Source: Octopus sinensis
Lineage: Eukaryota
Direction: 5' to 3'
Length of the DNA: 64,000 nucleotides
Assembly: GCF_006345805.1 (NCBI RefSeq)
Contig: NC_043013.1
Location: 6,448,001-6,512,000 of the forward strand
The number at the start of each line of letters is the position of its first letter. Position 1 is the first letter of the stretch. The notes beneath the pieces were generated by a model. That model worked only from the letters and a program-made list of their open reading frames with translations, was not told the DNA's origin and did no database searches. The position numbers were made by a program, and so were the translations under genes. Below are positions 19,401-22,400 of this stretch, in pieces.

Positions 19401-22400
19401 TGATTGCAGGATAGGATCTGTTCTTTTTATTTCAAGACACAGCTTGGTGTCATCTGCGTATTTCAGCACTGAAACATTCCTCAAATTGGCATCTATATCA
19501 TTAATATATGCAACCAACAGTAAGGGTCCAAGAACAGATCCCTGTGGTACACCATGAAATCCTTGGAACTTTCCAGGAAGATTCCGGCTAATTTTCCAGG
19601 AAGTTAGGAAACTTTCCAAGAAATCATCAGAACTTTCCAGGAAGTTTCCGACCAATCAATAAATCATCGATAACTTTTGTATTATCCTCTCAAATTATAC
19701 CAAAATCTCAGATAATCGTATTTATTGTCTGTGAAAATTATAGAATATAAAACAACTTTGATAAAAAAATTTTACCTACTTTTTGACGAAAACAATGCCA
19801 TTCTGAACATTTTGGCCGCAACTGTATTTATATATATATATATATATATTTAGAGACAGATAGATAGATAGACAGTTAGCAAGATAGATATATAGATAGA
19901 TAGACAGAGAGACAGACAGACAGATAGATAGAGAGATAGACAGATAGATAGATAGATAGATATAAACAAACTGACTAAAGGACGGCTAATATGTAATGCG
20001 AACCTTCTCTTCTACAGACCCTGTCTAATCCAGTTGTGGTTACTGTTCATGGAAACCAAGAATGTAAAGCAATGGCAACAATTTTGTGGGACAACCATTT
20101 TGCAGAACCTGTAAGTTAATCATTCATATTGTTGTTATTGTTAGGTGTGTGGAGTCGCAATGGCCCAGTGGTTAGGGCAGCGGACTCGCGGTCGTAGGAT
20201 CGCGGTTTCGATTCCCAGACCGGGTGTTGTGAGTGTTTATTAAGCGAAAACACCTAAAAGCTCCACGAGGCTCCGGCAGGGGATGGTGGTGATCCCTGCT
20301 GTACTCTTTCACCACAACTTTCTCTCACTCTTACTTCCTGTTTCTGTTGTACCTGTATTTCAAAGGGCCGGCCTTGTCACTCTCTTGTGTCATGCTGAAT
20401 ATCCCCGAGAACTACGTTAAGGGTACACGTGTCTGTGGAGTGCTCAGCCACTTATACGTTAATTTCACGAGCAGGCTGTTCCGTTGATCGGATCAATGGA
20501 ACCCTCGTCGTCGTAACTGACGGAGTGTTTCCATCCATTGTTAGGTGTAGTTGTTTGAGCTATTTGACACCCTGTGTGTTGTTGACATGAGATTTCAGGT
20601 TGTTGTTGATGAAGGTATTGGGCACCTGCTAATTGACAAGGTACCTGTCAGTCTACCTCTCAAATATCAAGTGTTGTTTGAGCATTTACTTGTTGATGTA
20701 TATACTTGATGTCAGGGTATTATTGGGGTATTTGTTGGGTGATTAGCTTGTGGTTAGTGTTGGTATAGCTCTAAGGTTGGAAACTGTTGTTAGGTGAAAG
20801 GGTAATGATTAGTGGATGTATTTTGTAGAAGAGAGAACATTGTTGGGGTACCCTACGGGGTATCCTTTTGAGGTACCTTGTTCGCATACCTTATAGGATT
20901 GTTCACTAGTGGTTAGCACTGGTGTGTCTCTAAAGTGGGAAACTGTTGTTAGGAGATGGGCTAATGATCAGTGAGTGTATTTTTTAGGAGGGAGAGAATT
21001 GTTGGGGTACCCTACTGGGTATCCTTTTGAGGTACCTTGTTTGCATACTTTATAGGAGTGTTCACTAGTGGTTAGCACTGGAGTGTCTCTAAAGTGGGAA
21101 ACTGTTGTTAGCAGATGGGCTAATGATCAGTGAGTGTATTTTTTAGGAGGGAGAGCATCGTTGGGGTACCCTACTGGGTATCCTTTTGAGGTACCTTGTT
21201 CGCATACCTTATAGAATTGTTCACTAGTGGTTAGCACTGGAGTGTCTCTAAAGTGGGAAACTGTTGTTAGGAGAAGGGCTAATGATCAGTGAGTGTATTT
21301 TTTAGGAGGGAGAGCATCGTTGGGGTACCCTACTGGGTATCCTTTTGAGGTACCTTGTTCGCATACCTTATAGAATTGTTCACTAGTGGTTAGCACTGGA
21401 GTGTCTCTAAAGTGGGAAACTGTTGTTAGGAGAAGGGCTAATGATCAGTGAGTGTATTTTTTAGGAGGGCGAGCATTGTTGGGGTACCCTACTGGGTCTC
21501 CTTTTGAGGTACCTTGTTCGCATACCTTATAGAATTGTTCACTAGTGGTTAGCACTGGAGTGTCTCTAAAGTGGGAAACTGTTGTTAGGAGAAGGGCTAA
21601 TGATCAGTGAGTGTATTTTTTAGGAGGGAGAGCATCGTTGGGGTACCCTACTGGGTATCCTTTTGAGGTACCTTGTTCGCATACCTTATAGAATTGTTCA
21701 CTAGTGGTTAGCACTGGAGTGTCTCTAAAGTGGGAAACTGTTGTTAGGAGAAGGGCTAATGATCAGTGAGTGTATTTTTTAGGAGGGCGAACATTGTTGG
21801 GGTACCCTACTGGGTCTCCTTTTGAGGTACCTTGTTCGCATACCTTATAGAATTGTTCACTAGTGGTTAGCACTGGAGTGTCTCTAAAGTGGGAAACTGT
21901 TGTTAGGAGAAGGGCTAATGATCAGTGAGTGTATTTTTTAGGAGGGAGAGCATCGTTGGGGTACCCTACTGGGTATCCTTTTGAGGTACCTTGTTCGCAT
22001 ACCTTATAGAATTGTTCACTAGTGGTTAGCACTGGAGTGTCTCTAAAGTGGGAAACTGTTGTTAGGAGAAGGGCTAATGATCAGTGAGTGTATTTTTTAG
22101 GAGGGAGGGCATTGTTGGGGTACCCTACTGGGTCTCCTTTTGAGGTACCTTGTTCGCATACCTTATAGAATTGTTCACTAGTGGTTAGCACTGGAGTGTC
22201 TCTAAAGTGGGAAACTGTTGTTAGGAGAAGGGCTAATGATCAGTGAGTGTATTTTTTAGGAGGGAGAGCATCGTTGGGGTACCCTACTGGGTATCCTTTT
22301 GAGGTACCTTGTTCGCACACCTTATAGAATTGTTCACTAGTGGTTAGCACTGGAGTGTCTCTAAAGTGGGAAACTGTTGTTAGGAGAAGGGCTAATGATC

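Follow-up and report, generated by a model that had tools for sequence, protein, structure and literature searches.

The 64,000-nucleotide stretch of Octopus sinensis DNA analyzed here (contig NC_043013.1, positions 6,448,001 to 6,512,000 of the forward strand; hereafter, the window) contains exons of a STAT gene, and one of its introns holds a compact array of four STAT-binding motifs of the gamma-interferon-activated site (GAS) type. The array belongs to a degenerate tandem repeat that lies between the ends of a mariner-like transposon remnant. Coordinates of all these features are collected in Table 1.

GAS motifs in an intron of a predicted STAT5-like gene

The search of the window with human STAT5B (tblastn) located ten colinear exons on the plus strand between positions 3598 and 34074. 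Their concatenated translation matches the structures of STAT5B and STAT5A at E ~1e-88, compared with 1e-54 for STAT6 and 1e-22 for STAT1/3, and for this reason the predicted host gene is regarded as STAT5-like. The array lies within a 2180-bp intron (17838-20017), between two exons encoding parts of the DNA-binding domain. The placement of the array inside an intron of a STAT gene, as proposed in the initial annotation, is borne out by the ten exons and by the STAT5B/5A matches. The exons for roughly residues 1-227, and hence the promoter and the N-domain, fall outside the window according to the same tblastn search. In a collection of 5.8 billion proteins searched with the STAT exons, no cephalopod STAT was found, although O. 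bimaculoides transposon proteins are present there; the best match to the 406-residue exon concatenate in this collection is a land snail protein with 48% identity.

We scanned the window with the pattern TTCNNNGAA and obtained 17 matches to TTCN3GAA, against 15.1 +/- 3.8 expected from shuffled sequences. There is therefore no general excess of this motif across the window or elsewhere in the STAT gene, and the signal is purely one of local clustering: the 13 matches outside the array are scattered through the window. The start-to-start steps between the four clustered motifs are 23, 20 and 21 bp, corresponding to gaps of 14, 11 and 12 nt, and 375 bp separate the end of motif 4 from the exon start at 20018. 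The narrower STAT5 consensus TTCYNRGAA is matched by all four motifs as well. These measurements agree with the initial annotation, which had reported consensus GAS sites at 19571, 19594, 19614 and 19635, phased at about two helical turns (23/20/21 bp, with spacers of 11-14 nt) and located ~375 bp upstream of the 20018 exon, with only isolated TTCN3GAA matches elsewhere. The only other close pair of such motifs in the window comprises two identical copies of TTCTCAGAA at 30338 and 30374; they lie 36 bp from each other in a later intron of the STAT gene, without any repeat structure. A lone TTCCAGGAA at 14651 was also considered and is not related to the repeat unit of the array.

The array also has the highest density of GGAA/TTCC cores in the window (11 per 100 bp, compared with a window mean of 0.75). 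Two of the four perfect ETS cores CAGGAAGT in the whole window are located here, at 19597 and 19638, and extra TTCCG half-sites occur 11 nt after GAS motifs 1 and 4. On the STAT gene's sense strand, the array is followed by GACCAATCA at 19650 (its CCAAT box lying at 19652) and by TATAAAA at 19746, while a DRE-like TATCGAT is found on the minus strand at 19666. The CCAAT and TATAAAA motifs form a promoter-like layout, yet such motifs are common in AT-rich sequence, and TATAAA and CCAAT have 135 and 109 matches, respectively, on both strands of the window. A possible reading of GGAACTTTCC and GGAAACTTTCC as NF-kB sites was rejected for their misfit to the 10-bp consensus GGGRNWYYCC. Searches with Rfam over positions 17000-21000 and with ARAGORN over the whole window returned nothing relevant, and no tRNA was called.

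Repeat structure of the array and its transposon setting

The four GAS units (U1-U4) have in common a 14-nt core, AAYTTTCCARGAAR, which is found nowhere else in the window at up to two mismatches. This core shows 3 mismatches in 56 positions across U1-U4, whereas the spacers vary both in sequence and in length. The repeat search revealed a 41-nt stretch duplicated 64 bp apart with 83% identity (19552-19592 and 19616-19656). The autocorrelation computed over 19552-19690 is likewise highest at lag 64 (z = 5.9, 56% matches) and shows sub-periods at lags 41 (z = 4.0), 21 (z = 3.8), 11 (z = 3.9) and also 20, of which the lag-11 periodicity is caused by the extra TTCCG half-sites. With its head-to-tail units and significant periodicity (z = 3.8-5.9), the array can be classified as a tandem repeat (minisatellite); Tandem Repeats Finder (TRF) at a score of at least 30 did not call it, the units being too degenerate. 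The repeat continues on both sides of the GAS units. Unit U0, whose left side is cut off by the junction with a long interspersed nuclear element (LINE), is without TTCN3GAA, and in U5 (19654-19671) and U6 (19672-19692) the same repeat is present with its GAS motif decayed away. The pair CAAGAAATCATC / CAATAAATCATC detected in the repeat search links the motif-less U5 to U3. Such loss of the motif in U0, U5 and U6 is as expected without constraint on it.

Judging from this organization, the four GAS sites are copies of one ~21-bp unit, and thus represent one event rather than four. Their copy number and ~21-bp phasing therefore result from the amplification of a single unit and are not independent evidence of design. 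The four sites listed in the initial annotation are therefore all present, but do not count as four separate occurrences. When the segment 19555-19830 was compared with the window by self-BLAST, the matches were at chance level only. The array was absent from the metagenome scans, and an exact look-up of the open reading frame was also empty. A 13-nt match, CCATGGAACTTTC, at 18307 was examined as the other half of an array split by the insertions and rejected, since it is no better than chance and does not stand out from many similar pairs.

The array lies 171-258 nt inside a 1.18-kb mariner-like element (18643-19824). The transposase remnant of this element was recognized on the minus strand in a tblastn search with Himar1 (residues 188-339, E = 3.8e-10), and the Pfam domain Transposase_1 matches it at E = 1.2e-4 with 22.3 bits, just below the 24-bit cut-off. 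In the terminal inverted repeats, 16 of 19 positions are complementary between 18650-18668 and 19800-19818. This inverted-repeat pair is the only one of its kind in the window even at up to three mismatches, with 0.05 expected, and the local alignment score of the inverted ends is 14, compared with 7.5 +/- 1.6 in the null set. Both ends resemble the Himar1 end ACAGGTTGGCTGATAAGT. A TA dinucleotide precedes the left end (18641-18642) and another one follows the right end (19825-19826), a weak indication given that the flanks are AT-rich or (TA)n. The inverted ends bracket the transposase remnant, the LINE reverse-transcriptase fragment and the array. The carrier is thus a dead, internally rearranged mariner-like element, in which the N-terminal coding part is replaced by a LINE fragment without its own 3' end. 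Such an arrangement probably represents filler DNA gained in gap repair rather than a normal LINE insertion. The initial annotation had raised the possibility that the sites come from a short tandem repeat belonging to the remains of a transposon, which fits the location of the repeat units within this mariner/LINE mosaic.

The LINE fragment matches RVT_1 in Pfam at E = 1e-15 and reaches 81% identity with O. bimaculoides proteins that carry the name 'jockey-like'. Thus, of the earlier description of the array as abutting a CR1/L2 fragment, the adjoining LINE stands, whereas the CR1/L2 label is unconfirmed. On the DNA level, the fragment is homologous to a copy in the 6.6-kb O. bimaculoides locus L001 (84% identity over 407 bp). 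The boundary of this homology is exactly at 19554, 13 bp short of the first repeat core. Beyond 19554 the window and L001 are unrelated (the alignment score of -15 is equalled by 92% of shuffles), and the array is therefore not LINE sequence. The core motif is absent from L001. The LINE has eight annotated relatives in O. bimaculoides, and in none of them is the array-side or the mariner-side junction present. An open reading frame of 238 amino acids (19655-18939, minus strand) continues through the array, and the Pfam and tblastn alignments creep into it. The interpretation of the array as diverged LINE coding sequence was rejected, because the O. bimaculoides relatives read ...WLKSFILGRKEVV..SSPYEMTSGVPQGS at this place and the homology stops at 19554. 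The passage of the open reading frame through the array is fortuitous.

Coordinates and other features of the window

Several other repetitive elements were observed in and around the introns of the STAT gene. Immediately after the exon 20018-20110, a tRNA-like head on the plus strand (20150-20290), with an A-box TGGCCCAGTGGTTAGGG and a B-box GGTTTCGATTCCC, looks like a tRNA-derived short interspersed nuclear element. The next STAT intron contains a young satellite-like array at 20769-22483 (10.8 copies of a 159-bp unit, 96% identity), while 6.9 copies of an 86-bp unit with 99% identity (29205-29794) directly follow the exon 28986-29078, and a (TTC)n microsatellite of ~108 copies (12619-12938) lies directly downstream of the exon 12420-12548; all three were called by TRF. 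A long LINE on the minus strand (8970-12291), of a family different from that of the fragment at 19165-19554, has large open endonuclease and reverse-transcriptase segments (stretches of 363, 169 and 220 amino acids) and takes up the greater part of the intron that separates exon 7255-7401 from exon 12420-12548. At 56138-56237 there is an assembly gap of 100 N.

Table 1. Positions of the GAS array, its carrier and the adjoining exons in the window
Feature	Position	Strand	Description
Upstream STAT5-like exon	17757..17837	+	AVTEEKF...KFSVW, DNA-binding domain (tblastn)
Left (3') terminal inverted repeat	18643..18668	+	after TA; 63 bp beyond the transposase stop codon
Mariner-type transposase remnant	18731..19160	-	C-terminal ~140 residues (19110-18731), about residues 200-339 of a Himar1-like protein, with stops and a frameshift
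LINE reverse-transcriptase fragment	19165..19554	-	RVT_1, 390 bp, truncated at both ends
Whole degenerate repeat	19552..19692	.	~21-bp units U0-U6 with 64-bp higher-order duplication
GAS motif 1	19571..19579	.	TTCCAGGAA, palindromic core; unit U1 19567-19589
GAS motif 2	19594..19602	.	TTCCAGGAA; unit U2 19590-19609; overlaps perfect ETS core CAGGAAGT at 19597
GAS motif 3	19614..19622	.	TTCCAAGAA; unit U3 19610-19630; straddles the border of both 64-bp copies
GAS motif 4	19635..19643	.	TTCCAGGAA; unit U4 19631-19653; overlaps ETS core CAGGAAGT at 19638
Right (5') terminal inverted repeat	19797..19824	-	TA and then a (TA)n stretch follow
(TA)n and (AGAT)n microsatellites	19825..19962	.	between transposon end and 3' splice site (TRF)
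Downstream STAT5-like exon	20018..20110	+	TLSNPVVV...WDNHFAEP, DNA-binding domain (tblastn)

Comparison with known STAT elements and origin of the array

In mouse, the commonest gap within the sites bound by STAT5 tetramers is 11-12 nt, which corresponds to centre-to-centre distances of 20-21, and troughs are found at centre-to-centre distances of 13, 18, 23 and 28 (PMC4990345). Secondary favoured gaps are 6-7 or 16-17 nt. The pair of GAS motifs 1-2 (gap 14, centre-to-centre 23) falls in one of the troughs. The octopus array resembles the tetramer sites in its tandem TTCN3GAA motifs and in having gaps (11 and 12 nt) that are the most frequent in mouse; however, typical tetramer sites pair a consensus motif with a weak one, whereas the octopus array consists of four near-perfect motifs in a regular repeat. 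As naked DNA, the array would be likely to bind an activated STAT5-type dimer in vitro, because the encoded DNA-binding domain is of the STAT5 type.

Other known systems resemble the array in different respects. In primates, two GAS motifs at a distance of 21 bp are present in MER41B, an endogenous-retrovirus long terminal repeat (LTR) to which STAT1 binds inducibly (PMC2897888), and therefore a transposon origin does not preclude function. Both elements have tandem consensus GAS motifs with 21-bp centre-to-centre spacing on a transposable element (PMC2897888). In contrast, the LTRs of the MER41 family exist in thousands of near-identical copies, for which interferon-gamma-induced STAT1 binding was detected by chromatin immunoprecipitation followed by sequencing (ChIP-seq), while the octopus carrier is a mariner/LINE mosaic with four sites rather than two. 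The Drosophila STAT92E clusters (Sotillos et al. 2010, PMC2877871) share with the array the homotypic TTCN3GAA motifs, an often intronic or distal location and a STAT5-like invertebrate STAT. However, the functional fly clusters are spread loosely over hundreds of bp and include sites with phylogenetic conservation; reporter fragments whose STAT92E sites were all non-conserved did not depend on JAK/STAT, and among the fragments with conserved sites only three of seven were pathway-dependent (PMC2877871). For autoregulation as such, a precedent is the autoregulatory enhancer of mouse Stat5a/b (Metser et al. 2016, cited in PMC11958444). Like the octopus array, it contains GAS motifs, lies in the STAT5 locus and has been proposed to act back on STAT5 expression. 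The mouse enhancer is intergenic, is not a tandem repeat, and was validated by ChIP-seq and by deletion in mice, whereas the octopus array is an intronic tandem repeat with a putative function. Finally, like an ordinary minisatellite or filler repeat in the transposon-rich introns of cephalopods, with dozens of comparable arrays in the window, the array is degenerate and of short period, with a higher-order duplication and with microsatellite and transposon flanks. It differs from these in that its unit carries a transcription-factor palindrome matching the product of the host gene.

We estimated how often a cluster of this kind would arise by chance from the 960 gapped 3+3 words that equal TTC...GAA in G+C count. 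Somewhere in the window, 31 of these words (3.2%) occur at least four times within 80 bp without overlap. For a GAS cluster specified in advance, the probability in the window is thus ~3%, which disfavours chance at a suggestive level. Among the 64 palindromic patterns of the form XYZ-N3-Z'Y'X', eight reach four copies, and seven of them are pure A/T. The window is very rich in short-period repeats, with 285 TRF rows and ~40 loci with at least four phased word repeats. The ~3% figure is weak where many windows get scanned, and it would lose all force were the composite element multicopy.

Taken together, these data suggest that the array is probably a neutral transposon-associated tandem repeat, the unit of which fortuitously carries the GAS palindrome. 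We infer that the match to the STAT consensus is a coincidence, as is the placement within a STAT gene, and that the array was not selected as a regulatory element. An ancestral unit would by chance have held the palindrome TTCCAGGAA, and slippage, unequal exchange or templated repair synthesis may have multiplied this unit, so that several consensus GAS motifs at ~21-bp phasing would have appeared automatically. A later 64-bp duplication within the ~21-bp repeat and partial decay would account for its present state, in the non-coding interior of a dead mariner-like transposon and of a 2.2-kb STAT5-type intron. The evidence leans against a selected function, given the mariner interior and LINE neighbour, the decayed flanking units, the cluster of ETS cores and the trough spacing. 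The neutral reading is also favoured by the normal frequency of GAS motifs in the rest of the gene, by the abundance of short-period repeats in the window and by the JAK/STAT independence of the Drosophila enhancers that have non-conserved sites only (PMC2877871). Several observations, however, weigh against a neutral origin. The ~3% chance level is low, which is suggestive, and no palindromic pattern with G or C other than TTC...GAA reaches four copies. The strict form TTCCNGGAA occurs only four times in the whole window, three of them at array sites. The spacings of motif pairs 2-3 and 3-4 coincide with the main STAT5-tetramer peak, MER41B provides a precedent for transposon-borne 21-bp GAS tandems that bind STAT1 inducibly, and the better preservation of the core than of the spacers in U1-U4 could reflect constraint, although the core was defined post hoc.

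An alternative is a co-opted, transposon-delivered STAT-responsive enhancer, on which activated STAT5-like dimers, possibly forming tetramers on sites 2-3 and 3-4, would raise the expression of their own gene, in line with the autoregulation proposed in the initial annotation. The fit of all four motifs to both TTCN3GAA and TTCYNRGAA, the 11- and 12-nt gaps at 20-21 bp centre-to-centre, the empirical chance level of ~3% and the location within the gene of the candidate binding factor (intron 17838-20017) agree with this explanation, as do a STAT5-type DNA-binding domain, whose exon segment VVVTVHGNQ... is 67% identical to human STAT5B, and the precedents of the MER41 21-bp tandem and of the mouse enhancer. 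We nevertheless regard it as unlikely, since the array is embedded in a lineage-specific transposon mosaic and its flanking units have decayed, the 14-nt gap between sites 1 and 2 is in a tetramer trough, any promoter is at least 16 kb upstream of the array, and the tetramerisation residues belong to the N-domain, which is outside the window. The ~3% chance level and the MER41 precedent give the enhancer hypothesis some weight. A more specific scenario, in which the mariner insertion brought the tetramer-phased GAS array and the host co-opted it as a STAT-responsive element (an autoregulatory enhancer or an internal promoter), seems distinctly unlikely. In its internal-promoter version, CCAAT (19652) and TATAAAA (19746) would drive an inducible 5'-truncated transcript, and its product, devoid of the N-domain and coiled-coil and of most of the DNA-binding domain, might exert negative feedback. 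The same GACCAATCA at 19650 and TATAAAA at 19746 on the plus strand, together with the densest GGAA/TTCC cluster of the window (of ETS type, possibly Rel/NFAT-like), its two perfect ETS cores and the TTCCG half-sites, could instead belong to a module for non-STAT factors, either an ETS-driven enhancer or a relic mobile-element promoter. This is very unlikely, as the motifs are short, TATAAA and CCAAT are common in the AT-rich window, and the arguments from decay and transposon setting apply equally. We give similarly little probability to the array being an intrinsic part of a multicopy, non-autonomous mariner/LINE composite family, with the STAT insertion as one of many random ones. The location of the array between the mariner ends, beside a captured LINE without a 3' end, is consistent with filler DNA picked up before transposition, rather than with a LINE that inserted later. 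However, in neither the window nor L001 do the array, the segment 19555-19830 or the inverted repeats occur a second time, and the array and mariner junctions are absent in the eight annotated O. bimaculoides LINE relatives.

The concept itself already has well-known precedents in vertebrates and flies. Co-option of the array, if true, would make it the first transposon-borne STAT autoregulatory element outside vertebrates. A functional array would mean that helically phased GAS tandems of the MER41 style also rewire JAK-STAT feedback in a mollusc, and it would provide a compact natural reporter element for STAT activity in cephalopods, where this pathway has barely been studied. In the more likely case that the array is neutral, it stands as a caution that in repeat-rich genomes the amplification of one unit can mimic a homotypic cluster of designed appearance.

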